Shown: positions 7,901-30,620 of the stretch, piece after piece
Position numbering within the stretch: the first letter of the stretch is position 1
How the letters are laid out: every line of letters starts with the position of its first letter
Origin: Thalia democratica
Lineage: Eukaryota
Assembly: GCA_965202585.1 (NCBI GenBank)
Contig: OZ241832.1
Coordinates: 58,156,001 to 58,220,000 of the forward strand
Reading direction: 5' to 3'
Length of the DNA stretch: 64,000 nucleotides
Translations under genes and position numbers: made by a program
The notes under the pieces: model-generated
The model's input: the letters and a program-made list of their open reading frames with translations, nothing else
Databases searched by the model: none
Told to the model about the DNA's origin: nothing

Positions 7901-9620
7901 ACTTACTATATTAAAAACTGATTATAACTTTAAAAGTTATTTTGTAGTCGAATCAAAGGTAATTATAAACTTGGTTTAGAAAAGAAATTAAAGCGTTATA
8001 CGCCCTAGCTATGCCATAAAAACTTGGCTTAATTACGACATAAGATAAATGACGTTTAAGGTTTTTACATTAATTAATTATTTTTTGGTTTACAAACTAA
8101 AAAAAGTTTAATACTTTATAAACATATAATGAAGATTTAATATAATATTTACTACCAGGTTTTATCAAAATTATTATTTTTTTACAATCTACTTAAGCTC
8201 TTTACATTTCAGTAAACCGAGCCATTGTTTTTAGTTAAGGCAAATAACAATAAATCTAGTATGCAAAAATCATTAAAACTAGTAAAGATAGCTGAAATGT
8301 GTTTTATATAGCGCTACTTGTAAGACTTTATGAGTCAGCTTATCTTTGATAAAAAGAAATATTAATATACAATATGTTTGTAGCATTATAGTAAATTTGT
8401 TAAATGTTTAAAAACTATGACTAAAAATCAAAGTTAAAGCTGTTTAATGAATTGCGTTAAATGTTTACAATTTACAACATTAAATTTAAAATTTTGAACT
8501 TTGTCAAGCACTTTTACGTTTGACTATTAAACACTAGTCAGTTTGTTTGTAAAATGTAGTAGAACTATACATAATCTACAAGTTATTCATTAAAATTATA
8601 TTTAAAGTTATATTATATTATTAAAGTTATATAATTTAATCAATTATAAACCTGAACAACATACAGATTTTAAGTTTAACAATTTATTTTTTTGCTACAT
8701 AAAAAATTAAATTATATAATATGTTTGCGTAAACGTAATAGTTAAATTTTAAAACAGTTCTACTTTACACAAATTACGATGAACGTGAATAATAATAAAA
8801 TAAAAGAATTTAGTTATTTTAGTTGTAAATAACATATTACTTTTTTATCACAAGTTTTTACTAATTACCTCATTTCGCCAACTTTTCAGCTTAAACAAAT
8901 ATAAACGAGTATTTTTTTAGAAACAAAAATTTTTTCAAGCTACTAGTTTTGCTGTTATCACTTTATTTTAAACTAGTTTGTACAATTTAAGTTAACTTGT
9001 AATTTTAAACTATAAATTGAAGTTGTTGAATCTTATTTTAGAAAGTTTTAACCTAATACTAAACATTAAATTAGGCATATAAACTTTTTTACTTATTCTA
9101 TAAAACTTTGCCTGAAAACATTCGTTGGTTATAGATTCATTTATAATTGAGAGAACTTTTTGTACTTTATGATGTCACAAACAGCTTTTCTTTGAAACTG
9201 GTATTACCTTAAGTTGGTTGATAAAAAGCTACAAAAATGATATCACCCAGTTTATTATTTTGCATTCATAACTGACTGATAAATGCTACAAATGGTTCTA
9301 TGAAATAAACTTGACTACTTAAAAACCAAAAAAAAATTTTATTTTGTTTTGCATGATAGCAAATGTATAGTAACGTTTTGTGTCTTTCAAAACTACTTGT
9401 ATAACTTATAATAAAACTAACGCTTTTATTCGAAGTTTTCAAAGTTTTCGTCAACACTTTGATATAAGTTAAAAAAAGTATTTTGATAATGCAATTATGT
9501 TATTTACACATATGTATTTAAACTTTGTTAGTAAGTACTATTTAACTTGTAAAATATTTTTGATACATTCATTACATACAGTGTTGTCAAGCTAAACTTT
9601 ACTAAAGATAATCAAATGTC

Positions 9621-9774
9621 ATGGAAAAGTGCCTTAAATCATTTCATTTAGCAATTTTAGTTTTGTTAAGCATTTCCGTTATTATCATTTCGTTGTGGTC
9701 CTCTAAAAACTTTGAAGAAAATGATATAATTAAAATGACTAAAAGTAAAACATCTAAAGAAAACTTTAAAAGAG
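9621..9774 (+). CDS. Sushi gene exon 1: hydrophobic signal peptide/signal-anchor followed by a basic linker ending in KR
   Basis: ATG at 9621, hydrophobic stretch FHLAILVLLSISVIIISLW, canonical AG|GTAAGT donor in phase 1 matching the CCP exons. Confidence 0.75.
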
Positions 9775-12700
9775 GTAAGTATTTTAACTTTGTTATTATT
9801 TAGAATCTTTATTTTTAAAGTTATCATCGGTCTAAAGAAATAATAATTATGCTAGGATATGTACAAAAATGTTCAATCATACCACTTCAACTACCAAACC
9901 ACAAGCTTTCAGTAGACTCAGACACAGTTTTCTTCTTTTTAAAACTCGTCAGTCAGTTGCAACCAAAAAACCTGCTTAGGCTTAGTAGACTTTTGTCATT
10001 GTTTTCTTTGATGCTGTCTTGCCGAGTAGACAATGTATTAAATATTGCACGGCTTACGTCACTGGTCATACCAACAAAGGGTAGCTTCGTCGTAAAACAT
10101 TATAAACAGTAATAATTGTAATTTGACTTGACGGTTGCGACTGACTGACGAGTTTTGATGAGAACAAAACCGGGTCTGAGTCTACCGAAGGCTTGTGGTT
10201 GATGATCTTATCTGGTGTGATCAAATCTTATGTAAACTTGACCTGTCAACAATCTGTCATCATATTTAGTCATCAAACACCTTTGTTAACTTGAGCTTGA
10301 ATTATGGCATCAGAAAGTCATACTCAGACTCAGTAGACTTTCACCGGTATTTTTTTGAAGATAATAATTAAAATACCTTTTAGTTTATGATAAACTATTT
10401 AAATAAAACTTTTGTATCAAACTAAATTTTGTGGTTATTATTTAGCTTAAAAATACTAACTATTCACACAAATTTCTGTAGAATGTTCAAAACTGAATGG
10501 AAATATCAAAAATGGAAGAGAGCTGATGATCAACATGAGAGAAGTTGCGTACAAATGCGAACCTGGATATTTTCTGTCGACCAAAACTTATCATGTTATT
10601 TGTAATAACGATGGGACGTGGAATTCTAGTGATGTTAACCCAAAATGCATAAAAAGTAAATTCTCAAAAATATTTTAAGCTTTTAAGTTCAATTTTATTT
10701 ACCGAAGTTGAATAAGCCGGATCCGGATCAAAGTAACATTAAAAGACGTTATATTGTTTTGTATAAACGCTTTTATAACAAAAACTACGCTAAACTTGTA
10801 ATCAGATTTACCAGTAAAACAAAATTGAAAAAAAAATATCTTTTTTAATTTTTTATACTCTTTTAAAGCTGAAACCAAAATAGTGTTGGTGTAAACAGAT
10901 GTGTTTATTTTAACCTCTTATTGAATGAAAATAAGAGGTGGCTTTCAACATCTATAAACTGCGGCCATACCATGAGTGAAAAGGGTTCGTAAACTCGTCT
11001 CGAAAACGAAGTTGTTCAACAGTTTTATGCACACTCTTACTTATTGTAAAACTTACGATATGTCTTTGAAATATTTAAAACTTTTGAACTACAATCTTTG
11101 CTCAACCAGTTTTTTTAATGCTTTTTTGACTGGTTTGATGTACTATATTATACCTTTTTTATCTTGTAGATAAACAGTCTAATACCATTTTTTGTGAATT
11201 TAATCATCGAGGTCAAATTCTCATTGTTTCTTTAGTTATTTCCTTCAAATTTTATTTTAGTTTCTTTTAACCTTTTATTTGATTGTTTTAAATATTAACT
11301 CAATTCCACCAAGCAAGAGCCTCTGGCCCGAAACGTATTCTATAGCTACAAAGAGCAACTTGGAAAAAATAACAAAATTATATAAAATTAGTTTAATTTA
11401 AAAATGATAAAAATTCAATTTTTTGTACACAAAATTGTATTTATATGTTTTTTTAATACAGTTGTGGTTAAAAGATAACATTTTTTTGTAGTATTTTAAA
11501 AAGTTACACAACTAATCGATGTTCATTGTTTGGTATGCCAGGCTCTATTAGAGGTAATAAGCAAAAAACAAAAAGTTTTATATAAAAAGCCATAGTTTTG
11601 AAAACTTAAACTATCCGAACTATATTTTAAGGATCCGTAGAACACTACTTTTAAAACTACAAAAAGTAAACTTTTAAAAGTTTTTATTTTATTTTTTTAT
11701 GCCCTCATTACCAGGCTGTGGAACGTTTCCCACGATAAAGAGGGCTGAGAAGCAGCTTATTAAAGACGCCAGCGTGAACTCGACCCACCGAACCGAAGTC
11801 AGCGTGAAGTACGTCTGCCAACGCGGGTACCATTACACATTGGACAGCCCGCTTGTTAACTGCACGGAAGAAGGATTCGACGGAGGTTTCGGTGAATGCG
11901 TGAAAGGTGGATGGTTTTTATATTTTTAAAAGTAATTTTTAACAGCTTGCATACTGAACAAAAATGCTTTCTATATTTTTCAAAACAAAAGCCTGCTAAT
12001 ATTTTGTTACAATGTTTTTTGAGTGAACAGTTCTATTTTTTAAAGAGTGACACGTTCAACGGCTAAACATTAAGCCAGCTAAAGTAAATATATAAAATGT
12101 AGAGCTTAAATGCCAAACAATTTTTTTGATCATTTTTTAGAGATGATCTGGTAAAAGTATCTTAAATATATAAATAAACCCTATAGATATAAAATAAGTT
12201 GTTATTTTTAAGTATAGCTTTAAACTGTTGAAGCCGAATATTAGTGTGTAATATACTGCTTATTTGTATATACTTATATAAACAAGTCAGACAATCTGCA
12301 ATAGTAAATTTTAATAAATACGTAATGTATACTAGCTGTAATTAAGTACTAAACCTAAATTTGTTTCAAGATTGCCCAGTTGCTCCACTGGATCTCACGA
12401 ACGGAACGGTTGCTGACGTAACAGCGCACACTAGGTGGAACCAGACGGCCGTGTACCGGTGCCTTCCGGGTCTATCACTCGTCCCCAATGAACACAACCG
12501 TAAGCATTGTCACGGCGATGGGAAGTGGGAAGGAAGATTAGGAAAATGTTTTCCTGGTAAGATAAAATAAATATACTTTCTCTTTAAGACAAACAAAAAA
12601 TTAAATGCAAACGTTGTTTGCATGCAAATAGTATAACTAGTATAAACAAAAAACTAAGCGTACTGTTTGAAAAAATGTATTATAATCAAAAGTACTCTAG

Positions 12701-15700
12701 CTGTTAGCAAATTTGATAATGTTTATAAATAATATTAATTTCAACAAAAATGATAACTAAAGTTAAAAAAAAAAAATTTGTACCTAAAAATAACAATCAG
12801 GAAAACATTAATATTTATCTTATTACTGTAAACAATCGAAGCAACTAGACTAGTAGTTTTATGTATAAGATAAATACTTCAATATTCTAAACAGTTTCTC
12901 TTTAAGGCAGCACTTATATTATTAATTACAATACTTATATTTTCATCAAATAGTTTTTCACAGATTGCAAAGTTCCTTCAATGTCCCATGCCGAGGCAAA
13001 ACTAGAAAATGGATATGTTGCCTCAAATTCTGTCACTAAAGGCACCAAAGTGAACTTTTTATGCATATCTGACTACAGCCCTAAAACAGCTCAACAGGTA
13101 GTCTGTGGTATTGATGGTGTGTTAAATGTGTCTAATGTCAGCTGCTACAAAGGTACATTTTTTATTTTAAATTTTAATCAATAATGTAGTTTAAAAAGTT
13201 TATATAAGTAAGTAGAATATTCATTAATTTTAAAGTGTGTTATGATTGTTAGACCTTCGTTAAGAATTATCGTGTTATTGATTTCATGTGATATCTTTTT
13301 AAAGATTGTACCGTTCCTTCAGTAGCTAATGCTGTAGCAAAACTAGAAAAAGAATCTGTTGCCTCAAATTCTGTCACTAAAGGCACCAAAGTTAATAACT
13401 TATGCAAACCTGACTACAGCCCTAAAACAGCTCAACAGGTTGTCTGTGGTATAGATGGTGTGTTAAATGTGTCTAATGTCAGCTGCTACAAAGGTACACT
13501 TTTTATTTTACTTCAAGTTATATATATAGTTTAATGGGTGAATAAAGTTAAGTAGATCATTTATTTATCTTAATGTTTGCTATGATTCTTAAATCATTGT
13601 TCAAAATATTTTGTCTCATTATTTTCGTGTGATAACTTTCACAGATTGTACCGTTCCTACAATATCCCATGCCGAAAAAAAATTAGAAAATGGATCTGTT
13701 CCCTCAAATTTTGTCACTAAAGGTACCAAAGTGAATTACTTATGCAAATCTGACTACAGCCCTAAAACAGCTCAACAGGTTGTCTGTGGTATAGATGGTG
13801 TGTTAAACGTCTCTGATGTCAGCTGCTACAAAGGTACATTTTTTATTTTGTTTTAGATTGTATATGTAGTTTAATGGGTTAATAAAATTAAGCAGATCAT
13901 ATATTCGTCTTAAATGTATGCTATGATTCTTAAATCCTTGTTCAAAATATTTCGTCTTATTATTTTCATGTGATAATTTTTACAGACTGTACCGTTCCTC
14001 CAGTGTCCTATGCCGAAGCAAAACTAGAAAATGGATCTGTTGCCTCTAATTTTGTCACTAAAGGCACCAAAGTGAATTACTTATGCGAATCTGACTACAG
14101 CCCTAAAATAGCTCAACAGGTTGTCTGTGGTATAGATGGTGTGTTAAACGTCTCTGATGTCAGCTGTTCCAAAGGTACATTTTTTATTTTGTTTTAGATT
14201 GTATATGTAGTTTAATGGGTTAATAAAATTAAGTAGATCATATATTCATCTTAAATGTATGCTATGATTCTTAAATCCTTGTTCAAAATATTTCGTCTTA
14301 TTATTTTCATGTGATAATTTTTACAGACTGTTCCGTTCCTCCAGTGTCCTATGCCGAAGCAAAACTAGAAAATGGATCTGTTGCCTCTAATTTTGTCACT
14401 AAAGGCACCAAAGTGAATTACTTATGCGAATCTGACTACAGCCCTAAAACAGCTCAACAGGTTGTCTGTGGTATAGATGGTGTGTTAAACGTCTCTGATG
14501 TCAGCTGTTCCAAAGGTACATTTTTTATTTTGTTTTAGATTGTATATGTAGTTTAATGGGTTAATAAAATTAAGTAGATCATATATTCATCTTAAATGGA
14601 TGCTATGATTCTTAAATCCTGTTCAAAATATTTCGTCTTATTATTTTCATGTGATAATTTTTACAGACTGTACCGTTCCTCCAGTGTCCTATGCCGAAGC
14701 AAAACTAGAAAATGGATCTGTTGCCTCTAATTTTGTCACTAAAGGCACCAAAGTGAATTACTTATGCGAATCTGACTACAGCCCTAAAACAGCTCAACAG
14801 GTTGTCTGTGGTATAGATGGTGTGTTAAACGTCTCTGATGTCAGCTGTTCCAAAGGTTCATTTTTTATTTTGTTTTAGATTGTATATGTAGTTTAATGGG
14901 TTAATAAAATTAAGCAGATCATATATTCATCTTAAATGTATGCTATGATTCTTAAATCCTTGTTCAAAATATTTCGTCTTATTATTTTCATGTGATAATT
15001 TTTACAGACTGTACCGTTCCTCCAGTGTCCTATGCCGAAGCAAAACTGGAAAATGGATCTGTTGCCTCTAATTTTGTCACTAAAGGCACCAAAGTGAATT
15101 ACTTATGCGAATCTGACTACAGCCCTAAAACAGCTCAACAGGTTGTCTGTGGTATAGATGGTGTGTTAAACGTCTCTGATGTCAGCTGTTCCAAAGGTTC
15201 ATTTTTTATTTTGTTTTAGATTGTATATGTAGTTTAATAAGTTAGTAAAATTAAGTAGATCATATATTCATCTTAAATGTATGCTATGATTCTTAAATCC
15301 TTGTTCAAAATATTTCGTCTTATTATTTTCATGTGATAATTTTTCAGACTGTACCGTTCCTCCAGTGTCCTATGCCGAAGCAAAACTAGAAAATGGATCT
15401 GTTGCCTCTAATTTTGTCACTAAAGGCACCAAAGTGAATTACTTATGCGAATCTGACTACAGCCCTAAAACAGCTCAACAGGTTGTCTGTGGTATAGATG
15501 GTGTGTTAAACGTCTCTGATGTCAGCTGTTCCAAAGGTTCATTTTTTATTTTATTTTAGATTGTATATGTAGTTTAATGGATTAATAAAATTAAGCAGAT
15601 AATATATTCATCTTAAATGTATGCTATGATTCTTAAATCCTTGTTCAAAATATTTCGTCTTATTATTTTCATTTGATAATTTTTCAGACTGTACCGTTCC

Positions 15701-18700
15701 TCCAGTGTCCTATGCCGAAGCAAAACTAGAAAATGGATCTGTTGCCTCTAATTTTGTCACTAAAGGCACCAAAGTGAATTACTTATGCGAATCTGACTAC
15801 AGCCCTAAAACAGCTCAACAGGTTGTCTGTGGTATAGATGGTGTGTTAAACGTCTCTGATGTCAGCTGTTCCAAAGGTTCATTTTTTATTTTGTTTCGAT
15901 TGTATATGTAGTTTAATGGGTTAATAAAATTAAGTAGATCATATATTCATCTTAAATGTATGCTATGATTCTTAAATCCTTGTTCAAAATATTTCGTCTT
16001 ATTATTTTCATGTGATAATTTTTCAGACTGTACCGTTCCTCCAGTGTCCTATGCCGAAACAAAACTAGAAAATGGATCTGTTGCCTCTAATTTTGTCACT
16101 AAAGGCACCAAAGTGAATTACTTATGCGAATCTGACTACAGCCCTAAAACAGCTCAACAGGTTGTCTGTGGTATAGATGGTGTGTTAAACGTCTCTGATG
16201 TCAGCTGTTCCAAAGGTACATTTTTTATTTTGTTTTAGATTGTATATGTAGTTTAATGGGTTAATAAAATTAAGTAGATCATATATTCATCTTAAATGTA
16301 TGCTATGATTCTTAAATCCTTGTTCAAAATATTTCGTCTTATTATTTTCATGTGATAATTTTTCAGACTGTACCGTTCCTCCAGTGTCCTATGCCGAAGC
16401 AAAACTAGAAAATGGATCTGTTGCCTCTAATTTTGTCACTAAAGGCACCAAAGTGAATTACTTATGCGAATCTGACTACAGCCCTAAAACAGCTCAACAG
16501 GCTGTCTGTGGTATAGATGGTGTGTTAAACGTCTCTGATGTCAGCTGTTCCAAAGGTACATTTTTTATTTTGTTTTAGATTGTATATGTAGTTTAATGGG
16601 TTAATAAAATTAAGTAGATCATATATTCATCTTAAATGTATGCTATGATTATTAAATCCTTGTTCAAAATATTTCGTCTTATTATTTTCATGTGATAATT
16701 TTTCAGACTGTACCGTTCCTCCAGTGTCCTATGCCGAAGCAAAACTAGAAAATGGATCTGTTGCCTCAAATTTTGTCACTAAAGGCACCAAAGTGAATTA
16801 CTTATGCGAATCTGACTACAGCCCTAAAACAGCTCAACAGGTTGTCTGTGGTATAGATGGTGTGTTAAACGTCTCTGATGTCAGCTGCTACAAAGGTACA
16901 TTTTTTATTTTGTTTTAGATTGTATATGTAGTTTAATGGGTCAATAGAATTAAGTAGATCATATATTCATCTTAAATGTATGCTATGATTCTTAAATCCT
17001 TGTTCAAAATATTTCGTCTTTTTATTTTCATGTGATAATTTTTCAGACTGTACCGTTCCTCCAGTGTCCTATGCCGAAGCAAAACTGGAAAATGGATCTG
17101 TTGCCTCTAATTTTGTCACTAAAGGCACCAAAGTGAATTACTTATGCGAATCTGACTACAGCCCTAAAACAGCTCAACAGGTTGTCTGTGGTATAGATGG
17201 TGTGTTAAACGTCTCTGATGTCAGCTGTTCCAAAGGTTCATTTTTTATTTTGTTTTAGATTGTATATGTAGTTTAATAAGTTAGTAAAATTAAGTAGATC
17301 ATATATTCATCTTAAATGTATGCTATGATTCTTAAATCCTTGTTCAAAATATTTCGTCTTATTATTTTCATGTGATAATTTTTCAGACTGTACCGTTCCT
17401 CCAGTGTCCTATGCCGAAGCAAAACTAGAAAATGGATCTGTTGCCTCTAATTTTGTCACTAAAGGCACCAAAGTGAATTACTTATGCGAATCTGACTACA
17501 GCCCTAAAACAGCTCAACAGGTTGTCTGTGGTATAGATGGTGTGTTAAACGTCTCTGATGTCAGCTGTTCCAAAGGTTCATTTTTTATTTTATTTTAGAT
17601 TGTATATGTAGTTTAATGGGTTAATAAAATTAAGCAGAACATATATTCATTTTAAATGTATGCTATGATTCTTAAATCCTTGTTCAAAATATTTCGTCTT
17701 ATTATTTTCATTTGATAATTTTTCAGACTGTACCGTTCCTCCAGTGTCCTATGCCGAAGCAAAACTAGAAAATGGATCTGTTGCCTCAAATTTTGTCACT
17801 AAAGGCACCAAAGTGAACTTTTTATGCAATTCTAACTACAGCCCTAAAACAGCTCAACAGGTTGTCTGTGGTATAGATGGTGTGTTAAACGTCTCTGATG
17901 TCAGCTGCTACAAAGGTACGTTTTTTATTTTGTTTTAGATTGTATATGTAGTTTAATGGGTTAATAAAATTAAGTAGATCATATATTCGTCTTAAATGTA
18001 TACTATGATTCTTAAATCCTTGTTCAAAATATTTCGTCTTATTATTTTCATGTGATAATTTTTATAGACTGTACCGTTCCTCCAGTGTCCTATGCCGAAG
18101 CAAAACTAGAAAATGGATCTGTTGCCTCTAATTTTGTCACTAAAGGCACCAAAGTGAATTACTTATGTGAATCTGACTACAGCCCTAAAACAGCTCAACA
18201 GGTTGTCTGTGGTATAGATGGTTTGTTAAACGTCTCTGATGTCAGCTGTTCCAAAGGTTCATTTTTTATTTTGTTTTAGATTGTATATGTAGTTTAATAA
18301 GTTAGTAAAATTAAGTAGATCATATATTCATCTTAAATGTATGCTATGATTCCTAAATCCTTGTTCAAAATATTTCGTCTTATTACTTTCATGTGATAAT
18401 TTTTACAGACTGTACCGTTCCTCCAGTGTCCTATGCCGAAGCAAAACTAGAAAATGGATCTGTTGCCTCTAATTTTGTCACTAAAGGCACCAAAGTGAAT
18501 TACTTATGCGAATCTGACTACAGCCCTAAAACAGCTCAACAGGTTGTCTGTGGTATAGATGGTTTGTTAAACGTCTCTGATGTCAGCTGCTACAAAGGTA
18601 CATTTTTTATTTTGTTTTAGATTGTATATGTAGTTTAATGGGTTAATAAAATTAAGTAGATCATATATTCATCTTAAATGTATGCTATGATTCTTAAATC

Positions 18701-21700
18701 CTTGTTCAAAATATTTCGTCTTACAATTTTCATGTGATAATTTTTACAGACTGTACCGTTCCTCCAGTGTCCTATGCCGAAGCAAAACTAGAAAATGGAT
18801 CTGTTGCCTCAAATTTTGTCACTAAAAGCACCAAAGTGAATTACTTATGTGAATCTGACTACAGCCCTAAAACAGCTCAACAGGTTGTCTGTGGTATAGA
18901 TGGTTTGTTAAACGTCTCTGATGTCAGCTGTTCCAAAGGTTCATTTTTTATTTTGTTTTAGATTGTATATGTAGTTTAATGGGTTAGTAAAATTAAGTAG
19001 ATCATATATTCATCTTAAATGTATGCTATGATTCTTAAATCCTTGTACAAAATATTTTGTCTTATTATTTTCATGTGATAATTTTTCAGACTGTACCGTT
19101 CCTCCAGTGTCCTATGCCGAAGCAAAACTAGAAAATGGATCTGTTGCCTCTAATTTTGTCACTAAAGGCACCAAAGTGAATTACTTATGCGAATCTGACT
19201 ACAGCCCTAAAACAGCTCAACAGGTTGTCTGTGGTATAGATGGTGTGTTAAACGTCTCTGATGTCAGCTGTTCCAAAGGTTCATTTTTTATTTTATTTTA
19301 GATTGTATATGTAGTTTAATGGATTAATAAAATTAAGTAGATCATATATTCATCTTAAATGTATGCTATGATCCTTAAATCCTTGTTCAAAATATTTCGT
19401 CTTATTATTTTCATGTGATAATTTTTACAGACTGTACCGTTCCTCCAGTGTCCTATGCCGAAGCAAAACTAGAAAATGGATCTGTTGCCTCTAATTTTGT
19501 CACTAAAGGCACCAAAGTGAATTACTTATGCGAATCTGACTACAGCCCTAAAACAGCTCAACAGGTTGTCTGTGGTATAGATGGTGTGTTAAACGTCTCT
19601 GATGTCAGCTGTTCCAAAGGTTCATTTTTTATTTTGTTTTAGATTGTATATGTAGTTTAATGGGTTAATAAAGTTAAGTAGATCATATATTCATCTTAAA
19701 TGTATGCTATGATCCTTAAATCCTTGTTCAAAATATTTCGTCTTATTATTTTCATGTGATAATTTTTACAGACTGTACCGTTCCTCCAGTGTCCTATGCC
19801 GAAGCAAAACTAGAAAATGGATCTGTTGCCTCTAATTTTGTCACTAAAGGCACCAAAGTGAATTACTTATGCGAATCTGACTACAGCCCTAAAACAGCTC
19901 AACAGGTTGTCTGTGGTATAGATGGTGTGTTAAACGTCTCTGATGTCAGCTGCTACAAAGGTACATTTTTTATTTTGTTTTAGATTGTATATGTAGTTTA
20001 ATGGGTTAATAAAATTAAGTAGATCATATATTCATCTTAAATGTATGCTATGATTCTTAAATCCTTGTTCAAAATATTTCGTCTTATTATTTTCATGTGA
20101 TAATTTTTACAGACTGTACCGTTCCTCCAGTGTCCTATGCCGAAGCAAAACTAGAAAATGGATCTGTTGCCTCAAATTTTGTCACTAAAGGCACCAAAGT
20201 GAATTACTTATGCGAATCTGACTACAGCCCTAAAACAGCTCAACAGGTTGTCTGTGGTATAGATGGTGTGTTAAACGTCTCTGATGTCAGCTGTTCCAAA
20301 GGTTCATTTTTTATTTTGTTTTAGATTGTATATGTAGTTTAATAAGTTAGTAAAATTAAGTAGATCATATATTCATCTTAAATGTATGCTATGATTCTTA
20401 AATCCTTGTACAAAATATTTTGTCTTATTATTTTCATGTGATAATTTTTCAGACTGTACCGTTCCTCCAGTGTCCTATGCCGAAGCAAAACTAGAAAATG
20501 GATCTGTTGCCTCTAATTTTGTCACTAAAGGCACCAAAGTAAATTACTTATGCGAATCTGACTACAGCCCTAAAACAGCTCAACAGGTTGTCTGTGGTAT
20601 AGATGGTGTGTTAAACGTCTCTGATGTCAGCTGCTACAAAGGTACATTTTTTATTTTGTTTTAGATTGTATATGTAGTTTAATGGGTCAATAGAATTAAG
20701 TAGATCATATATTCATCTTAAATGTATGCTATGATTCTTAAATCCTTGTTCAAAATATTTCGTCTTTTTATTTTCATGTGATAATTTTTACAGACTGTAC
20801 CGTTCCTCCAGTGTCCTATGCCGAAGCAAAACTAGAAAATGGATCTGTTGCCTCTAATTTTGTCACTAAAGGCACCAAAGTGAATTACTTATGCGAATCT
20901 GACTACAGCCCTAAAACAGCTCAACAGGTTGTCTGTGGTATAGATGGTTTGTTAATCGTCTCTGATGTCAGCTGTTCCAAAGGTTCATTTTTTATTTTGT
21001 TTTAAGTTGTATATGTAGTTTAATGGGTTAATAAAATTAAGCAGATCATATATTCATCTTAAATGTATGCTATGATTCTTAAATCCTTGTTCAAAATATT
21101 TCGTCTTATTATTTTCATGTGATAATTTTTACAGACTGTACCGTTCCTCCAGTGTCCTATGCCGAAGCAAAACTAGAAAATGGATCTGTTGCCTCTAATT
21201 TTGTCACTAAAGGCACCAAAGTGAATTACTTATGCGAATCTGACTACAGCCCTAAAACAGCTCAACAGGTTGTCTGTGGTATAGATGGTTTGTTAATCGT
21301 CTCTGATGTCAGCTGTTCCAAAGGTTCATTTTTTATTTTGTTTTAAGTTGTATATGTAGTTTAATGGGTTAATAAAATTAAGCAGATCATATATTCATCT
21401 TAAATGTATGCTTTGATTCTTAAATCCTTGTTCAAAATATTTCGTCTTATTATTTTCATGTGATAATTTTTACAGACTGTACCGTTCCTCCAGTGTCCTA
21501 TGCCGAAGCAAAACTAGAAAATGGATCTGTTGCCTCTAATTTTGTCACTAAAGGCACCAAAGTGAATTACTTATGCGAATCTGACTACAGCCCTAAAACA
21601 GCTCAACAGGTTGTCTGTGGTATAGATGGTGTGTTAAACGTCTCTGATGTCAGCTGTTCCAAAGGTTCATTTTTTATTTTGTTTTAGATTGTATATGTAG

Positions 21701-24700
21701 TTTAATAAGTTAGTAAAATTAAGTAGATCATATATTCATCTTAAATGTATGCTATGATTCCTAAATCCTTGTTCAAAATATTTCGTCTTATTACTTTCAT
21801 GTGATAATTTTTACAGACTGTACCGTTCCTCCAGTGTCCTATGCCGAAGCAAAACTAGAAAATGGATCTGTTGCCTCAAATTTTGTCACTAAAGGCACCA
21901 AAGTGAATTACTTATGTGAATCTGACTACAGCCCTAAAACAGCTCAACAGGTTGTCTGTGGTATAGATGGTTTGTTAAACGTCTCTGATGTCAGCTGTTC
22001 CAAAGGTTCATTTTTTATTTTGTTTTAGATTGTATATGTAGTTTAATAAGTTAGTAAAATTAAGTAGATCATATATTCATCTTAAATGTATGCTATGATT
22101 CTTAAATCCTTGTACAAAATATTTTGTCTTTTTATTTTCATGTGATAATTTTTACAGACTGTACCGTTCCTCCAGTGTCCTATGCCGAAGCAAAACTAGA
22201 AAATGGATCTGTTGCCTCTAATTTTGTCACTAAAGGCACCAAAGTGAATTACTTATGCGAATCTGACTACAGCCCTAAAACAGCTCAACAGGTTGTCTGT
22301 GGTATAGATGGTGTGTTAAACGTCTCTGATGTCAGCTGTTCCAAAGGTTCATTTTTTATTTTGTTTTAGATTGTATATGTAGTTTAATGGGTTAATAAAA
22401 TTAAGCAGATCATATATTCATCTTAAATGTATGCTATGATTCTTAAATCCTTGTTCAAAATATTTCGTCTTATTATTTTCATGTGATAATTTTTACAGAC
22501 TGTACCGTTCCTCCAGTGTCCTATGCCGAAGCAAAACTAGAAAATGGATCTGTTGCCTCAAATTTTGTCACTAAAGGCACCAAAGTGAATTACTTATGCG
22601 AATCTGACTACAGCCCTAAAACAGCTCAACAGGTTGTCTGTGGTATAGATGGTGTGTTAAACGTCTCTGATTTCAGCTGCTACAAAGGTACATTTTTTAT
22701 TTTGTTTTAGATTGTATATGTAGTTTAATGGGTCAATAGAATTAAGTAGATCATATATTCATCTTAAATGTATGCTATGATTCTTAAATCCTTGTTCAAA
22801 ATATTTCGTCTTTTTATTTTCATGTGATAATTTTTACAGACTGTACCGTTCCTCCAGTGTCCTATGCCGAAGCAAAACTAGAAAATGGATCTGTTGCCTC
22901 TAATTTTGTCACTAAAGGCACCAAAGTGAATTACTTATGCGAATCTGACTACAGCCCTAAAACAGCTCAACAGGTTGTCTGTGGTATAGATGGTGTGTTA
23001 AACGTCTCTGATGTCAGCTGTTCCAAAGGTTCATTTTTTATTTTGTTTTAAGTTGTATATGTAGTTTAATGGGTTAATAAAATTAAGTAGATCATATATT
23101 CATCTTAAATGTATGCTTTGATTCTTAAATCCTTGTTCAAAATATTTCGTCTTATTATTTTCATGTGATAATTTTTACAGACTGTACCGTTCCTCCAGTG
23201 TCCTATGCCGAAGCAAAACTAGAAAATGGATCTGTTGCCTCTAATTTTGTCACTAAAGGCACCAAAGTGAATTACTTATGCGAATCTGACTACAGCCCTA
23301 AAACAGCTCAACAGGTTGTCTGTGGTATAGATGGTGTGTTAAACGTCTCTGATGTCAGCTGTTCCAAAGGTTCATTTTTTATTTTGTTTTAGATTGTATA
23401 TGTAGTTTAATGGGTTAGTAAAATTAAGTAGATCATATATTCGTCTTAAATGTATGCTATGATTCTTAAATCCTTGTTCAAAATATTTCGTCTTATTATT
23501 TTCATGTGATAATTTTTACAGACTGTACCGTTCCTCCAGTGTCCTATGCCGAAGCAAAACTAGAAAATGGATCTGTTGCCTCAAATTTTGTCACTAAAGG
23601 CACCAAAGTGAATTACTTATGCGAATCTGACTACAGCCCTAAAACAGCTCAACAGGTTGTCTGTGGTATAGATGGTGTGTTAAACGTCTCTGATGTCAGC
23701 TGTTCCAAAGGTTCATTTTTTATTTTGTTTTAGATTGTATTTGTAGTTTAATGGGTTAATAAAATTAAGTAGATCATATATTCGTCTTAAATGTATGCTA
23801 TGATTCTTAAATCCTTGTTCAAAATATTTCGTCTTATTATTTTCATGTGATAATTTTTACAGATTGCACCGTTCCTCCAGTGTCCTATGCCGAAGCAAAA
23901 CTAGAAAATGGATCTGTTGCCCCAAATTCTATCACTAAAGGCACCAAAGTGAATTACTTATGCAAATCTAATTACAGCCCTAAAACAGCTCAACAGGTTG
24001 TCTGTGGTATAGATGGTGCATTTAACATCTCTGAAGTCAATTGCTTCCCAGGTAGTATTTCAATTTGTTCATTTATGTGTTCTAAAAAATCTGATGAAAA
24101 TTTAATTTTTTTACTTAATTGTAAATATCTTTGTTTAATATTTTTGTTCTAAAAAAGATTGAAATATAGCATTTTGTAATCAAAGTTTGACTATTGGTTG
24201 TTTCTGTATAAGTTTTAATATTTTGATTAAGGTTATATAAGGGAATTTCAATATTTTGTTTACAAAAAGTTATATTTGTCTACATTCCAAAACTAAATAT
24301 ATTGTTTATTAAGTTCTTATAAATTTCTTTACTGTTTTTTGAAGTTTAGTCAATTAAGTTAAAGGTATTAGTTGCAAAAAATTAAAATCAAAATAAAACT
24401 TGTCATTGCGCATTGTCTCTGAATTTTGAAAAATTTACTATAATTCTGTATCATTTATCAATTTATATCAAATTACTTACAAACGATAATATAGATCAGG
24501 GTCTCTGAAGTGGGCAAATTTATTCCCTTTGGTACCATGAGCAGCAAGGGGGGGCACAAGGTCATAGTTTGAAACTTACAATAGATATTCTTGGGTTGAT
24601 GATGAAGAGCCAAAATAAAAGGTCCTAGGCAGATTTAGTGGTAGTATTTTTGAGAAAAAATTTTGGGGGAGGGGGGGATAATTTTAATTGGGGCTTTTTG

Positions 24701-27361
24701 AAAAAGTGTTTGTGAAACCTTGATATAGATGATTTTTTTTTTCATAGATTGCACCGTTCCTACTTTTAACAATTCCGAAGTTAGACGAGAAAATGAAAAT
24801 GATGCCATTACTGGAAATGTCACTCACGGTACCACAGTAAACTACTATTGTAACAGTGGCTACAGCCCTAAAGAAGTTCAATCGTTTAAATGTGGAGCTG
24901 TCATGCTTGGTTCAATTGACGTATCCGGCATCAATGAATGCAAAAAAGGTAAATTTTCATTAAAATTTTCTAGTTTTTAGGTTTTTTATATACTATCAAA
25001 ACGTGTGTAGATAGAAGAGTAATGTACTTTACAGTAAATATCTACAATCGTTACTGTTATTGTAAAAGGAACGTAAGAATAAGATGCAACTTTGACAGCA
25101 TTGTTATTTTTTTAAGTAGTCCTAAAATATCTTTTAATAAATAAGTCCATGTTTAATGCTTAGTCATTTTAATATACGTCCAGGAACATAATATCAACCA
25201 AAACATTATACTAATCGCTTCTTAACCTATCTGAAACATTAAATTACGTTGATGGGTTTAAAGTTAAAAATAACTTAAATGTTTTGGTAATTTAGATTGA
25301 AGAGTGGCAACCCTGAGTTTTAAAATTACAACTATTTGCTAACTTGTGTGTATTCTTTTACATATCACTTGAATTTGTTCATTCTCTTATACTTTTTTAA
25401 GCAAAATAACTTTCCACATTTTTTTTTAACAATCATCAAAAATTAAGACATTCCATGCCTGCCCATAGCCAACGCGAAAACCAACATAACGATGCAGTAT
25501 TCAGGGGAAGAGTTTGTGCAGGGAGACGAAATAACTTACGAGTGCGAACCAGGATTCCAATCGACTTCTGAAACCGATTCGCTCGAATGCACTTCAGGCG
25601 GATGGTCGGAAGACGTGAGATGTATTAAAAGTGAGTGTTTTAAAACAGATGATATTTTTAGTTACAGAACAGAGTAAATTGGAAGTGTGCGTTTTGAACA
25701 TTGAAAATTTTTACAGCGTGCCCCCCGCTCAAAGCGCCCGATGACAGTAAAGTGGTTCCGCTGCTCAATCGCAAACATCGGTCGGGCGTCCTGTTGCCAG
25801 GCGAAGTCGTCGAAGTCGAGTGCAACGAAGATTTCGTGTTCTTCGACAAGACAGGCGATTACGCGTACGAATGTTTGGACGACGGCACTTGGAACAACAC
25901 CGCAGAAGCAACTTGCATAAAACGTGAGACGTTAAAAATTTTATTGAGCTAACGTTATTTTGTTAGGTTGTTTTTTTTTGCAACCTCATGTGCGGTTTCT
26001 CGACAACAGGATGCTCCGCGCCGCCGGACGCAGACAAGTACGAGGTGGAGAGCGAATACAGCTTTGAGAGTGGCGAGTACTGGCTGAACAGCACCGTCAC
26101 GTACACGTCATGCAACTCCGAACACCACCGGTTGTACCCTGATGACGTCACGAAAGGCGCGAACGTGCTCACGTGCCAAAGGACCGGCGTCTGGCACCCC
26201 GAAACGGCCCCCAACTGCGGGTTGAGTGAGTTTTTTTGAACTAAACTGACTTTTCTGTTCTAAATAAAACTCTTGTCACCTCTGTTTTTGAGGGGCACCA
26301 GCTCAAGCCACTGTTCGATTTCGAAATAACTTTTATTTTTTATTTTTTTTTTGTTTTTAACAGCTTGCGACAACGACCCAGTGGAGTGCCACTTTATTGA
26401 AGAAGGACCACAAAGATATTTAAAAAAAGAGTGTGATGTTGGAGTAGGAAAAGTCGAAGGCAGTGTGGAAAAGTACGGGGATAGGTTGAATGTAAACGTT
26501 GGCGAAAATGGCAATTGGACTTTGCGGAAGAGGGATTTTTACTGCCAGAAGGGGTGGTATTACGAAAATCCGGAAATCAGGACGTACACCTGCAAGACCG
26601 GAAGTCCTTGGGCTCCCTACCCGCTGCCGAGGTGTCTGAAAGGTGGGTGGTTTTAAATTTAACGAAATAATTTTAAGCGCCGATGAAAGCGCTTTGTTAG
26701 CCGGATTTTTTGAATCTGGAAAACTAAGCTCATTCATTTACGGAACGGCTGTTTTGAAAAACAAAAGTAAAAGAGGAGAAATAGTAAAATTATTAAGGCA
26801 CCTGACGCGTTGTGCTTTTTGTGGTTGAAAACAGTTGGCTTGGTAGTGCGTTCGATCGGTTTTAAATTTTAAAGTGGTGTATTTATATAATAAAAAAATG
26901 TTTACTATTAGTTTGATTAAGGTCGATTTGAACTAGCATTTAAAAATATTATGTTAACTTAAACAATTAAAAAAGTAACAACCTTTCCTTCTACACTAAA
27001 AAAAAATAAAGTAAAGTAAAATTTAGCAGAAAAAATACTAACTTTAATTTACTAAATAATAAATATATTTCAAAAACGTATTAACAATAATTACAATAAA
27101 ATTATTATATGGAAATACCTAATTTGAATTTTTTTGAAATTTTCAGTTTGTGATAGTGATCTTCGTAGAATTGCAAACGTTGACGATTTCACTTTTTCAA
27201 ACCATGAAGAAGGCCGGAACTACAGAAACGGAAAGTACCTGTCCGGAACAACAGTCGATTACACTTGCCATGCGGGGTTCGAGCCAATAAATGGGGGTGT
27301 AGCTACTTGCACACCAAGCGGGCTTTGGAATCCGCCTATTAGTTGCAGTGTGCCGCGATGA
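9621..27361 (+). CDS. Giant multi-Sushi (CCP/SCR) domain protein, 43 exons, ~2747 aa, 42 CCP modules, N-terminal signal peptide or type II anchor
   Basis: Exons: 9621-9774 (MEKCLKSFHLAILVLLSISVIIISLW..., ends phase 1, GTAAGT), 10482-10655, 11715-11906, 12371-12556, 33 x 189-nt exons from 12964-13152 to 23863-24051, 24748-24948, 25448-25630, 25717-25923, 26010-26225, 26364-26642, 27147-27361 (TGA). Every internal exon is AG/GT-flanked, phase 1-1 and a multiple of 3. Each has the C-x-x-P...C...(G)Y/F...C...(W)...C CCP pattern (e.g. YKCEPGY...CNNDGTW...PKC; YTCHAGF...CTPSGLWNPPISC). Summed CDS is 8244 nt. Confidence 0.92.
9896..10201. mobile_element. MITE-like element with ~68-bp terminal inverted repeats in Sushi gene intron 1
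   Basis: 9896-9964 (AACCACAAGCTTTCAGTAGACTCAGAC...AAAACTCGTCAGTCAGTTGCAACC) is the reverse complement of 10133-10201 (GGTTGCGACTGACTGACGAGTTTT...GTCTGAGTCTACCGAAGGCTTGTGGTT) with few mismatches. No TSD was resolved. Confidence 0.75.
12964..24051 (+). repeat. Tandem array of 33 exon-intron units (period 339-341 bp), each encoding one 63-aa CCP module
   Basis: Direct: recurring unit TTT(A)CAG|ACTGTACCGTTCCTCC...AAAG|GT(A/T)CAT plus a 150-152-nt intron, also visible as the ladder of near-identical ORFs in the ORF track. Consensus peptide DCTVPPVSYAEAKLENGSVASNFVTKGTKVNYLCESDYSPKTAQQVVCGIDGVLNVSDVSC(S/Y)K. Confidence 0.98.
24497..24722 (+). mobile_element. hAT-type MITE (226 bp) in the intron just 3' of the Sushi array
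   Basis: 8-bp TSD ATATAGAT at 24489-24496 and 24723-24730. Imperfect TIRs CAGGGTCTC / CAAGGTTTC. Internal motif GAAACTTACA..AGATATTCT.G.GTTGATGATGAAGAGC is shared with copies at ~50950 and ~56860. Confidence 0.8.
24748..27361 (+). CDS. Sushi gene 3' unique region: six divergent CCP exons ending at stop codon; no C-terminal TM or GPI signal
   Basis: Exons 24748-24948 (diverged paralogue of the array module), 25448-25630, 25717-25923, 26010-26225, 26364-26642 (93 aa, 6 Cys), 27147-27361. Confidence 0.88.
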
Positions 27362-29124
27362 TAATGCACACTTTCCATTTTTGTTTCAACTTTTTCAAAT
27401 GCGTTCTATTTGTTTGTTCGTGTTTGAACAAGCAGTTTGTAGTTTACTCGCTTGTTGTTTTATTTTGTTTCTTCGATTAAAGTGTTATGATTTCTTGTTT
27501 TTAAGTTTTTTTTAATTAATTTCATATATGTTAATTTTTGTTTTACTGAAACATTTATGTGCCTTAACAAAATATAAATGAAATACCACGCGAAATTATT
27601 TTAAATAAAACAATATTATTTTGTTGATAAAGTAAATGAAAAAAAGTTGTAATGTTTTTTGTTTAAGATGTAAAAATCACTTTTACACAGCTGACTGTTA
27701 TTACACAGCAACAGGGACGTACTAGCTCAAAAAAGTTACGAATCTGCAAAAATTAAAACATATGAAATAACACGTCCTAGCGGGAACACAGGAATTTAAA
27801 CTAACTCTAATGTTATTGAATTTAATCTGAAAATATGCACTTATGTTAATACATCAAAAATGGAATGTTGAAGTACGAGTGATAACTGTATACAAGGCAT
27901 TTCATTTTGCTCCACACCCCCTATGACTCTTTATGTCACGCCACTTGTTTAAACCCAGTAAATATTCATTAAGAATAAGTATAAATTATCACAATTTAAC
28001 TCAAAAGCATTCATATTCTTTTCAAAATCAAAATTTAACGTAGTCAATAGTAACAACAAGTTATGCAAATTTTTATAACATAAAATTGTATGATTTTGAT
28101 TTTTGAAGCTACAGCTTCCATTAGAAGCCTTTTGACAAACTAAAGCTTTAATGCGCTAAATGATACAAAAGTTTGTATTAAATCTGTATTTAATTGGTTT
28201 AATTTTACGACACTAAAAATGCTGAAGAGTGTCATGCATAACTAAGCATAAATAAATACTAAAAGGTAAAGCTAAGAAAGCAGAGTCTTTTAAAGTTGAA
28301 ATAAAAGCAATAATTGTCACACATAAGAATACGTTTCTGTAGATATGCAGAAACGTACCAAGCTACGTCCCTGCACAGCAATATTTTATTTGCCAAAAAT
28401 TTAAAGCGTTTATAAGTTTGGTCACATTTACTGTGGACTGGCAATTGATTGAAATGTAACGAGATCGATTATCGATTATATTTAACTTTAATTCATTTAC
28501 GAAGTTAAACTCACTTCTTAACCACGTAGATTATAATTAGTTATACACAACACAAAATGTTTATTAAATAATAAATTCTGTTAGAGTCATTGATGTAAAT
28601 AATCTTTATTGAATCTAAAAAATAATGTACTAATAAGGTTTCAGCTTTAAGAGAAGTCGGAACGCTACCGTAAGTTGAACCAGACCCATGTTAGTATAAT
28701 CTAGTAAGCTTATACCCCGTTTGGTATAGAATAACCTCTACCGGAACAAAAAATTTAAACTGATGAAAATTTAAAACTGAACTAAGCATTACAACAAGTT
28801 TTGTTTACTAGTTCAAAACAATTGAATTAATTTTTCATTTTTTGTAAAGTGCTTATGCTAAATCAGTAAGTATTGCCTCAGAAAAAATAAATAAAAGTTT
28901 TAAACTAACCGACTAGTAGGGTTAAAGTGGTATTTGGTAACTAAAAAACAATTAGAAAATTAAAAAATTGAAAATGTTTTGAAAACTCATAAAATTTAAA
29001 CATTTAAAATGTTTTAACATCGCATTATTCAAACTTAGGTCATAAAATAACTACAGTTAAACCACTAAATATTTTTTTAACTACGTTGAAAACAGAGTAA
29101 CTGAATAAATTGACAAAAACAAAA

Positions 29125-29198
29125 TCCATCGGGAATCGAACCCAGGTCGGTCGCTCAGAAGACTGCTTTCATCAAAAACCCCTCCATTGAGCTCATTG
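29125..29198 (-). repeat. tRNA-derived SINE head or tRNA pseudogene
   Basis: Minus strand has an A-box-like AGCTCAATGG and a T-arm/B-box CTGGGTTCGATTCCCG at tRNA-like spacing. The acceptor and anticodon stems do not pair well. Confidence 0.55.
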
Positions 29199-30159
29199 AC
29201 GATATTGTTCATAAATAAATTGTTTATTTATTTTTAATCATTTTAGAGATCTATTTTCTCTTATATATACTTTTATTTATGTTAATAATTTTTTTTTGTG
29301 TAAGCAAGTTTAATGAATTTTTTTGTGCAAGCAAACGAAAATATTACTCGAAGTTATTAGATAATTTGATAAACAATAACTTGCTAATTTTAAAAGTTAA
29401 AGCTTTAATATTTATCAAGTTTGAAAACAAGTTTGTGTCATATTGTCATTTGTTTTAGGTTCATTCGAACTTAATTATCTTTAAGTATTAAACTCTATGT
29501 TTCTGAACAGAATACAATTGTTAGGGTTGCCAAAAGTTTTTTGAAAATTTTTAGGTGTTTTAAAGTACAACTTCTTTGTAAAGTTAAGTATAAAATTAAA
29601 ACTAAAGTAAAACACTGTGTAAACATGATAGAATATTTAAAAGGTACTATAAATATTTTTATGCTTCTTTGAATGTTTTTTTAAGATAAAAAAAACTATA
29701 AATAACTAAAAGTAGTTATTCCATATGATAAATTTTTCGTATATAATATTAGACTTCTAAGTATTTATATCTTAACTTAAAAACTTCATCACTTTATAGT
29801 TAGGTACTTTTCAAAATACAATATAAAATGAGACTTTAGAATAGACATTATTTGTTTTTCTATTAGTTTTATTTTAAGTGCGTAATAAGAACTATTTCTA
29901 ACACAATTTTATCTAAAGAGTGTGAATGTGTTGTATATAAACACTAAGAGAAATAGCCTACTTAAACTTGTTAATTTTATAGATACAAAAAAACTACCAT
30001 GCTTAAAAAAGTAAAAACAAAGGTTTTGTTTTAAACCCACTGTTATTGCTTGAAGTGCTTTCAAATGCTCCGCCAGCAAGCAAGTAGATTAATATCTCAA
30101 GCAATTAACAGAAACTATTAACTAAATGCTAACGAAGCATTTAAAGTACTTCAAGCAAT

Positions 30160-30620
30160 AATAATAATTTTTAAAAGAAAAGGTTGGTCCAAATGGTGAA
30201 CTATAAAACGACTGAATAGTACATACTTTACTTAGAAAGACATATGACCGATCCAGGATGCAAACTATCCCCTGCACAGATCCTTTTGGGACGAAATTCA
30301 AACGACTCATTACCTTACGTCAGAAAGAATGTTATGACTTACAATAACCCGCAGATCTCAAAAAATTTGCGTGACACATGAACCTCTTAGGTCTCGTTAT
30401 GTTAAGTCACTTGAATATTTAATTGAGCACACAAAGTCATTGCCAAGACTGAATTGCGGTGACCATGTCACGGTACAAAACCATGCAGGTCCTTTTCCTA
30501 ACTATTGGTAGAAAATTGAAGTAGTTGTGAATTTATAAAACTTTTATCAATATGTTGTTAAGGTTGATGAATCAATTCGCTTAACTTTTCTAAATCTTAG
30601 CTTCTAAGAAAATAAAACCC
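30160..30620 (+). pseudogene. Decayed LTR-retrotransposon (Gypsy-like) pol 3' fragment, integrase C-terminal region
   Basis: Frame-broken translation: GPNGEL..; DPGCKLSPAQILLGRNSNDSLPY; EHTKSLPRLNCGDHVTVQNHAGPFPNYW*K; YVVKVDESIRLTFLN. This matches the recalled SPAQxLFGR / L.PL..GD.V.VQN...P.KW / Y.VKVDGS.RLT.RNR pattern of invertebrate Ty3/Gypsy integrase tails. Multiple stops and frameshifts. Confidence 0.72.

Follow-up and report, generated by a model that had tools for sequence, protein, structure and literature searches.

A 33-unit exon-intron array in a Thalia democratica gene: a probable protein-coding tandem repeat of single CCP modules under concerted evolution

Introduction

Tandem repeats that carry complete exons and introns inside a coding sequence are known already as a kind, the closest described systems being the KIV-2 repeat of LPA and the long homologous repeats (LHRs) of CR1. 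Here we describe a further case, an array of 33 exon-intron units inside a predicted 43-exon gene of the tunicate Thalia democratica. The stretch that we analysed, called the window below, is the 64,000 nt of contig OZ241832.1 between 58,156,001 and 58,220,000 (assembly GCA_965202585.1). It contains no N, and positions are those of the whole window on its plus strand. We consider it likely that the array is a protein-coding exon-intron variable number tandem repeat (VNTR) of the LPA KIV-2/CR1 kind, and that it is subject to concerted evolution.

The KIV-2 repeat of LPA is a 5.6-kb unit with two exons per kringle, of which an allele has 1-40 copies that account for up to 70% of its coding sequence (PMC11462820, PMC11201333). 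Our array shares several features with it. Complete exon-intron units are repeated, the introns are near-identical as well as the exons, the frame is kept at any unit number, most of the coding sequence is repeat (76% here), and the product is a secreted protein, in our case a predicted one, of repeated small disulfide-bonded modules. The differences are of scale and of origin: the unit is 341 bp with one exon rather than 5.6 kb with two, and it belongs to another domain family in another phylum. Furthermore, the LPA range has been measured in populations, whereas the counts known here are 33 and at least 29.

CR1 is a chain of 30 complement control protein (CCP, or Sushi) modules arranged in LHRs of seven CCPs, and the gain and loss of repeats gives rise to length alleles (PMC5845983, PMC5612547). 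The predicted protein described here is likewise an all-CCP extracellular chain, with 42 modules as against 30, and has internal intron-containing repeats. However, its period is one CCP and not seven. CR1 also has a transmembrane anchor and binds C3b and C4b, whereas the array protein has no transmembrane segment and no detectable specific similarity, its best library matches reaching at most 39% identity.

Tunicates have Sushi proteins of their own. In Ciona, vCRL1 is described as a Sushi-domain receptor that is highly polymorphic between individuals and is needed for formation of the blood system, and the text consulted describes no homogenized exon-intron array for it (PMC9265791). The fester and FcoR proteins of Botryllus combine immunoglobulin domains with a single Sushi domain and one or three transmembrane helices, they vary between haplotypes, and exons of the ectodomain can be skipped (PMC12582321). 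With vCRL1 the array protein shares being a tunicate Sushi-domain protein, and with fester/FcoR an extracellular tunicate Sushi architecture and haplotype variation. In contrast to these type I membrane receptors it has no transmembrane segment, and in contrast to fester/FcoR it has 42 Sushi modules and no immunoglobulin domain. A library that includes Ciona proteins holds none above 39% identity to the array unit, short fragments aside. Judged by its predicted protein, the array gene is not a member of the vCRL1 or fester/FcoR groups.

What is new is the single-CCP, 341-bp case in a tunicate gene and not the kind of repeat. The initial annotation of the window had called the array type an unfamiliar one; this was overstated, given that LPA KIV-2 and the CR1 LHRs are described and that a paralogue on C5 of the same genome has a four-unit array.

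Results

A 33-unit array of exons and introns

Tandem Repeats Finder reports a single tandem array at 12934-24039, with a period of 341 and 32.6 copies; matches are at 96% and indels are essentially absent. When parsed by splice sites the array resolves into 33 head-to-tail exons, from 12964-13152 for the first to 23863-24051 for the last, each of exactly 189 nt. All 33 lie between an AG and a GT, and the 32 introns that separate them are 150-152 nt long. Each exon is of phase 1-1, with two leading bases that complete a codon and one base left over at the end. Joined together, the 33 exons form a stop-free frame of 6,237 nt that encodes 132 Cys, four per unit. The unit count, the lengths of exon and intron, the exon phase, the four Cys and the open frame had all been claimed in the initial annotation, and its coordinates and counts proved exact. 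As the exon length is divisible by three and every unit holds a complete exon and intron, the frame stays open at any copy number, which is the hallmark of a VNTR of the LPA KIV-2 type. The array is made up of three parts:

12964-13152, 13305-13493 and 13645-13833, plus strand: array units 1-3, the diverged 5' edge, old unit types common to the second haplotype, 88-92% identical to the core exons
13986-23710, plus strand: array core, units 4-32, 29 near-identical exon-intron units with a 341-bp period
23863-24051, plus strand: array unit 33, the diverged 3' edge, 89% identical to the core exons, Pfam Sushi score 26.7 bits

The introns of the array do not all start alike. The donor reads GTTCAT, with T at +3, in 19 of the 33 units and GTACAT in 11, and the GTTCAT form is associated with exons that end in Cys-Ser-Lys. 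In the second array described below the donor is GTACAT in 29 of 29 units. This comparison indicates that the non-consensus donor has spread through the window array.

A second version of the locus

Whole-assembly searches covered 802 Mb in 1,833 contigs. A 41-nt exon pattern that occurs 30 times in the window array was found once elsewhere, on an unplaced 17-kb contig, C1519. The reverse complement of C1519 is collinear with window positions 6665-12903 at 89% identity. After this flank there are about 860 extra bases, followed by at least 29 units of 341 bp that run up to the contig end. All 29 of these exons are open, bounded by AG and GT, and encode the four Cys at the same spacing as in the window; two units have a fifth Cys. 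Units of the array type, at 77% amino acid identity or more, occur in the assembly only in the window and in C1519, and the next Sushi exons in a protein search reach at most 47%. The stretch of about 860 bases (6260-7120 of the C1519 reverse complement, between exon 4 and the first unit, as against 12903-12934 in the window) is probably a repeat insertion, and its depth is partly raised in all runs.

When the two versions are aligned upstream of the array, the four 5' exons match without gaps and in frame at 93-96% identity, whereas their introns contain indels and reach 85-91%. Divergence in the flank is large, at 6-15%.

The two arrays are dominated by different unit lineages, and the dominant C1519 peptide differs from the window core peptide at 11 of 63 positions. 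Exon and intron identities are 98.5% and 95.5% within the window core (units 4-32, pairwise), 95.4% and 90.2% within C1519, and just 88.6% and 76.9% between the two arrays. In a joint tree of units, window units 3-32 form one tight clade; the clades are array-specific, and units of the edge are shared. The first window unit (W01) groups with C1519 units 11, 13 and 1, and the second (W02) with C1519 units 10, 12, 15 and 24. W01 and the first C1519 unit (C01) are 91% identical in the exon and 90.8% in the intron. This is about the divergence of the flank, which argues that the two are positional orthologues. Array-specific clades together with shared edge units are the classic pattern of unequal exchange. 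We take a second haplotype that is dominated by another unit lineage as direct evidence of fast array turnover.

Homogenization of exons and introns

The similarity of the units had been attributed to recent amplification or ongoing concerted evolution, and the excess of within-array over between-array identity, along with the array-specific clades, bears this out. The introns had also been described as about as identical between units as the exons. Their identity is high, but they are not equal to the exons: in the core 20 of 189 exon sites and 35 of 152 intron sites are variable (Fisher P = 0.003). Core introns are about three times more diverged than core exons, yet are far too similar to be old duplicates. 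Edge units 1-3 and 33 are 88-92% identical to the core. Despite the homogeneity, 30 of the 32 full units have distinct sequences, while 14 of the 33 encode an identical peptide.

Single-nucleotide indels are confined to the introns, as had been noticed for the window alone. Over both arrays we count 10 distinct ones (binomial P = 0.002 for the asymmetry between exons and introns), and there is no frame-shifting indel in the 62 exons. One C1519 exon has a 3-nt deletion that keeps the frame.

Two further possibilities were considered. In both arrays unit identity is independent of how far apart the units lie and no higher-order period was found, so neighbour effects and a higher-order repeat were rejected. 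Could the introns host a functional RNA? There is no Rfam match at E <= 1 within 12800-15200, and hitch-hiking accounts for the similarity given that intron divergence equals synonymous divergence; this candidate was rejected as well. We conclude from these comparisons that the array evolves in concert, with whole exon-intron units being duplicated, lost and converted.

Selection on the units

Between the consensus units of the two arrays the non-synonymous divergence (dN) is 0.080 and the synonymous divergence (dS) 0.238, a ratio of 0.34. Nine of the 11 consensus replacements fall within codons 1-37, for which the ratio is 0.44. The corresponding ratio for polymorphism within arrays (pN/pS) is 0.36 in the window core and 0.62 in C1519. 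Ratios below one were found in all comparisons (0.17-0.62), the N-terminal half of the module included, and positive selection is therefore unsupported.

The dS between the arrays is about the same as their intron divergence (0.238 and 0.23). This implies that the introns are about neutral and are similar only through being copied along with the exons. Conservation along the intron is uneven, with 83% of the first 20 nt and 88-95% of the last 40 nt kept between arrays as against 65-78% in the middle, which is the pattern expected of working splice signals. Taken together, these patterns indicate that purifying selection keeps the units in frame and preserves their splice sites, their four Cys and most of their residues.

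Read depth and haplotypes

Three DNA runs were used for depth. Runs X1 and X2 come from one sample (S1) and are genomic, as introns are covered; X3 is a different sample that is labelled as another organism. In S1 two contig versions are found 3' of the array, one identical to the window and the other 5-8% different, each at a word depth of about 35-41 in X1 and 43-50 in X2. Two versions at equal depth point to a highly heterozygous sample. The assembly itself has no second copy of the 3' exons above 75% identity, though the reads show two versions.

The main unitig through the array exon has a depth of 1,142 in X1, and in X2 the total at this site is 1,717. These values correspond to about 30 and 36 haploid unit equivalents, which is incompatible with a handful of units. 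Expansion by the assembler had been named at the outset as an outcome that would undo the array; this check by short-read depth finds 30-36 units or so, and no expansion.

The depth of the C1519 version is far lower. A 1,205-nt contig that is identical to the C1519-specific insert has a depth of 4.7 in X1 and 4.1 in X2, where the main haplotypes have about 40x each. Contigs of C1519-type (C-type) units have depths of 44-49 and 41-52 in the same runs, which is equivalent to roughly ten copies at about 4.5x. In X3 the C-type unit contigs reach 270-643, as against 57-89 for contigs of the C1519 flank and 32-56 for single-copy contigs at the locus, and so C-type arrays are multi-copy in another sample too. 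A fixed paralogue was rejected as the source of C1519, since it should have a depth of 80x or more rather than 4-5x, and since the assembly has no second 3' half. C1519 is therefore a third, minor haplotype in S1. It could stem from a chimeric or pooled colony, from brooded embryos or from a very close relative present as a contaminant.

The unit is a CCP module

Sushi (PF00084) is the only clear Pfam match of the array unit. The curated cut-off of this family is 20.7 bits. One core unit by itself falls just short of it at 20.6 bits (E = 6e-4), units 1 and 33 reach 21.0 and 26.7 bits, and the flanking exons score 18.9-32.4 bits where matched. Summed over 33 units in one protein, the Sushi score would lie far above the cut-off. 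Each exon encodes 63 residues with Cys at positions 2, 34, 48 and 61 in 33 of 33 units, which is the CCP spacing of four invariant Cys. The conserved Trp between Cys3 and Cys4 is absent: the canonical DG-x-W-N aligns with DGVLN, with Leu in place of Trp. This Trp is kept in the flanking exons 2, 4, 39-41 and 43.

An AlphaFold2 model of the unit, built from a 28-sequence alignment, is all-beta with a predicted local distance difference test score of 94.8 and a predicted template modelling score of 0.78. A Foldseek search of the PDB with this model returned CCP modules in nearly all of the 50 best places (CD55, CD46, beta2-glycoprotein I, C4BP and factor H), with template modelling scores of 0.6-0.72 and a probability of about 1, in agreement with the CCP beta-sandwich fold. 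The Pfam, AlphaFold2 and Foldseek results together identify the array unit as a CCP module of a Trp-less subtype.

CCP genes usually have one module per phase 1-1 exon. The same holds here for 42 of 42 module exons, which start one residue ahead of Cys1. A three-residue linker joins Cys4 of a module to Cys1 of the one that follows, and two N-X-S/T sequons are present in every array unit.

Gene model and predicted protein

The array can be placed in a gene model that closes in frame. In addition to the array units listed above, it consists of:

9621-27361, plus strand: whole gene model, 43 exons with AG/GT boundaries
9621-9774, plus strand: exon 1, start codon, hydrophobic signal peptide and short charged linker, with the phase-1 donor GAG|GTAAGT (open reading frame and splice scan)
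10482-10655, plus strand: exon 2, canonical CCP with Trp, phase 1-1, AG/GT, Pfam Sushi 26.5 bits; 96% identical to C1519 without gaps
11715-11906, plus strand: exon 3, CCP with four Cys, phase 1-1, AG/GT, Pfam Sushi 18.9 bits (under the cut-off); gap-free against C1519
12371-12556, plus strand: exon 4, canonical CCP, phase 1-1, AG/GT, Pfam Sushi 29.5 bits; the last unique module 5' of the array
24748-24948, plus strand: exon 38, Trp-less CCP with 44% amino acid identity to the array unit (alignment), Pfam Sushi 19.8 bits
25448-25630, 25717-25923, 26010-26225 and 26364-26642, plus strand: exons 39-42, unique C-terminal CCPs, AG/GT, phase 1-1, with homologous exons in paralogues
27147-27361, plus strand: exon 43, last CCP, with the stop codon directly after, Pfam Sushi 28.4 bits

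Exon 1 is 95.5% identical to the second haplotype, in frame and without gaps. Exons 39-41 match Pfam Sushi at 21-32 bits and exon 42, which is atypical, long and has six Cys, has no Pfam Sushi match. The homologue of exon 38 is the unit that is amplified four-fold in the C5 paralogue.

Joined, the 43 exons give 8,244 nt whose sole stop is at the end, and a predicted protein of 2,747 residues. It has 42 CCPs, a mass of 293 kDa before glycosylation, an isoelectric point of 4.95 (acidic) and 77 N-glycosylation sequons, and the array accounts for 2,079 of its residues (76%). Its 171 Cys are explained by four in each of 42 modules, one in the signal peptide and two extra in the atypical module. Sushi is the only Pfam domain found. 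Hydrophobic 19-mers occur only in exon 1, and there is no C-terminal hydrophobic segment and no transmembrane or glycosylphosphatidylinositol (GPI)-like tail in the model protein. A transmembrane or GPI anchor, or further 3' exons, were rejected because only AT-rich open reading frames and no convincing exon lie downstream.

The product is thus predicted to be a secreted, acidic, all-CCP protein, which is probably heavily N-glycosylated. The extracellular location first proposed for it agrees with the predicted signal peptide and the lack of a transmembrane segment. The accompanying picture of unique C-terminal modules at the end of a stalk holds in part: such modules are present, and unique CCPs are found at the N-terminal end as well.

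Some further observations concern the 3' half of the gene and the sequence beyond it. There is a weak phase-1 GT at 27347/27348, just after the last Cys and 14 nt before the stop, which is a possible alternative donor and C-terminus; no convincing exon or transmembrane-coding open reading frame follows it up to 29.5 kb. Word depth rises to 27,000-36,000 at 24496-24632 in intron 37, with many loose ends at 24547-24615, and to 800-900 at 26962-27098 in intron 42, in all three DNA runs and as against about 100 nearby. These are high-copy interspersed repeats inside the two introns. A suspected transposon remnant at 30220-30508 has no Pfam match.

Relatives and paralogues

Among 1.84 billion representative proteins phmmer finds 76 matches to a single unit. 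The sole close one is a 73-residue single-exon fragment from an ENA metagenome contig, at 84% identity; three other short fragments (65-100 residues) are 42-51% identical to the unit. The longer matches are generic multi-Sushi proteins at no more than 39%, such as PAMR1, SVEP1-like and CR2; with the vertebrate members of these three the unit shares 26-32% identity, again a generic level. No orthologue with the same array was found among the annotated or assembled proteins of this library.

That the host is a tunicate is also shown by a mitochondrial HSP70 gene of this genome, which shares 87% identity with its counterparts in Clavelina and Phallusia, 85-86% with Ciona, 84% with Botryllus and Styela and about 80% with arthropods. 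Fragments of the locus are present in marine metagenomes. An environmental contig (ENA ERZ17084750, coverage 2; positions 1-563) has the exon-intron-exon layout of the array type with other unit variants. In it an exon that resembles the first unit, with a Cys-Lys-Val start, is preceded by an array-like exon and not by exon 4, a layout that hints at further structural haplotypes. An exact search of JGI metagenome contigs with the most conserved 28-mer of the array exon gave no match.

Paralogues at 66-75% DNA identity were found on C5, C6 and C2 of the same genome. The C5 paralogue (C5:17,936,405-17,949,871, minus strand) has about 24 Sushi exons, resembles the window gene in architecture and ends without a transmembrane segment. 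It contains an array of its own, at C5:17940011-17941276 on the minus strand, with 4.3 copies of a 296-bp unit (four intact Trp-less units) that are 95% alike, and this array lies between two exons like exon 4. The two genes share a Trp-less exon-intron array at a homologous position, and homologous C-terminal modules; they differ in that the C5 array has 4.3 units of 296 bp and the window array 33 of 341 bp. The array thus occupies a place that is able to expand within a family of secreted multi-CCP proteins specific to this lineage.

Repeats of this sort are also seen in mature mRNA of planktonic relatives. The Tara Oceans metatranscriptome proteins P0081, P0020 and P0083 contain Trp-less Sushi repeats that are 92-95% identical to one another. 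They differ from our array in having a two-module period and in being just 34-47% identical to its unit. At the end of P0083 there is a C-type lectin domain (Pfam E = 4.8e-11), which makes for a layout of repeat stalk and lectin head that is absent from the array gene.

Discussion

In this work we have argued for a coding VNTR in which a 341-bp unit, one complete CCP exon and its intron, is repeated 33 times, and in which any number of units would splice to an open frame. From what is generally known of tandem arrays, the most likely drivers would be unequal crossing-over, between sister chromatids or homologues, or gene conversion. Such exchange would homogenize introns along with exons and leave older unit types at the edges. 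An ancestral array with several unit types could in this way have given rise to haplotypes in which different types have spread, with old types persisting at the edge. Both the length and the composition of the array are probably polymorphic in the population.

What might such a protein do? A CCP module is about 3.5-4 nm long. In extended form, 33 of them with three-residue linkers would make a glycosylated rod some 115-130 nm in length. We infer that the array may serve as a spacer or a multivalent surface, long and fairly stiff, which would keep the unique N-terminal modules (three CCPs) apart from the C-terminal ones (six CCPs) outside the cell.

A number of points weigh against the interpretation as a whole. 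The core unit on its own is 0.1 bit short of the Pfam cut-off and has no canonical Trp. C1519 ends within its array, and with 33 units set against at least 29 no difference in copy number can be read from the two. The depth estimates are rough, being word depths of contigs with some records filtered, and bins in X2 range from 1,674 to 3,894. T at +3 in 19 of 33 donors makes skipping of some exons possible. No RNA run was found and thus no transcript evidence for the gene, the spliced exon-exon junction of the array has no exact match in JGI metagenome contigs, and the library of 1.84 billion proteins holds no multi-unit protein of the array type. The spacer or multivalent role, finally, is suggested by architecture only.

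Several other explanations deserve consideration. The one that survives best, though we still think it unlikely, is that C1519 is no allele of this species. It could be a paralogue, or the orthologous locus from a very close relative that contaminates the sample at a low level, in which case the divergence would lie between species. The low depth of C1519-specific contigs in X1 and X2 and the large flank divergence of 6-15% would fit this, as would the high copy number of C-type units in a sample labelled as a different organism. On the other hand, the two main haplotypes of S1 themselves differ by 5-8% 3' of the array, so that the divergence of C1519 is within the range of the species, and a fixed paralogue is excluded by depth and by the missing second copy of the 3' exons. 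The conclusion of concerted evolution stands whether C1519 is an allele or a relative's locus.

Array exons might instead be used as cassettes, in such a way that protein length is set by alternative skipping and not by the genome. All exons are 189 nt and of phase 1-1, which would permit it, the donors have T at +3 in 19 of 33 window units and are GTACAT in all 29 of C1519, and genes of the Botryllus fester family do skip extracellular exons (PMC12582321). However, the related Tara mRNAs retain consecutive, near-identical Sushi repeats, and purifying selection acts alike on all units. We find it rather improbable that splicing sets the length.

A more speculative idea is that the array is a recognition determinant, in allorecognition, gamete self/non-self discrimination or pathogen binding, and that its allele-specific composition is a selected, diversifying trait. 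The haplotypes differ extremely in the array, the consensus replacements cluster in the N-terminal 37 codons, tunicates have polymorphic Sushi receptors in vCRL1 and the fester family (PMC9265791, PMC12582321), and the present family is multigenic (C5, C6 and C2). Set against this, dN/dS is below one everywhere, near-identical units carry little information, and the protein has no transmembrane or signalling part. We regard a role in recognition as doubtful. Equally tentative is the more specific version in which the array would be the selected, hypervariable part of an individuality molecule, with unit lineage and number setting its binding specificity or its reach, and with length held near 30 by selection while the sequence turns over.

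It is very unlikely that the array is a dead satellite, either a Sushi exon caught in a non-coding repeat or a pseudogene with residual open frames. The lack of a transcript and the 19 GTTCAT donors might be taken to suggest one, but 62 of 62 exons are open with AG/GT and four Cys (a fifth in two C1519 units), dN/dS is 0.34-0.36, indels are confined to introns, intron ends are kept and all 43 exons of the model join in frame. Mis-assembly is a familiar problem with tandem arrays, and array depth bins vary 2.5-fold between the two runs of one sample, yet a short repeat of a few real units expanded by the assembler is scarcely credible when an 11-kb array is shorter than typical HiFi reads, depth gives about 30 (main unitig, X1) and 36 (X2) haploid copies, 30 of 32 full units are distinct, as units from artificial expansion would not be, C1519 independently holds at least 29 units and C-type units are multi-copy in a third run.

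If the array is indeed a coding VNTR under concerted evolution, it is a compact example of this process acting on whole exon-intron units within a gene. At 11 kb it can be spanned by a single long read, and its introns provide a neutral internal clock beside exons on which purifying selection acts. Three or more haplotypes can already be seen, and in two of these the arrays are built from different unit lineages. This would allow direct measurement of how fast units are exchanged unequally, of the edge effect and of any selection on array length, in a close invertebrate relative of vertebrates.

The locus also draws attention to a family of secreted multi-CCP proteins that is specific to this lineage and in which a stretch of Trp-less Sushi modules can expand; gene predictors and short-read assemblies usually go wrong in such cases. 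Should length variation or a role in recognition turn out to be true, the array protein would be a new type of polymorphic extracellular molecule for tunicate immunobiology.

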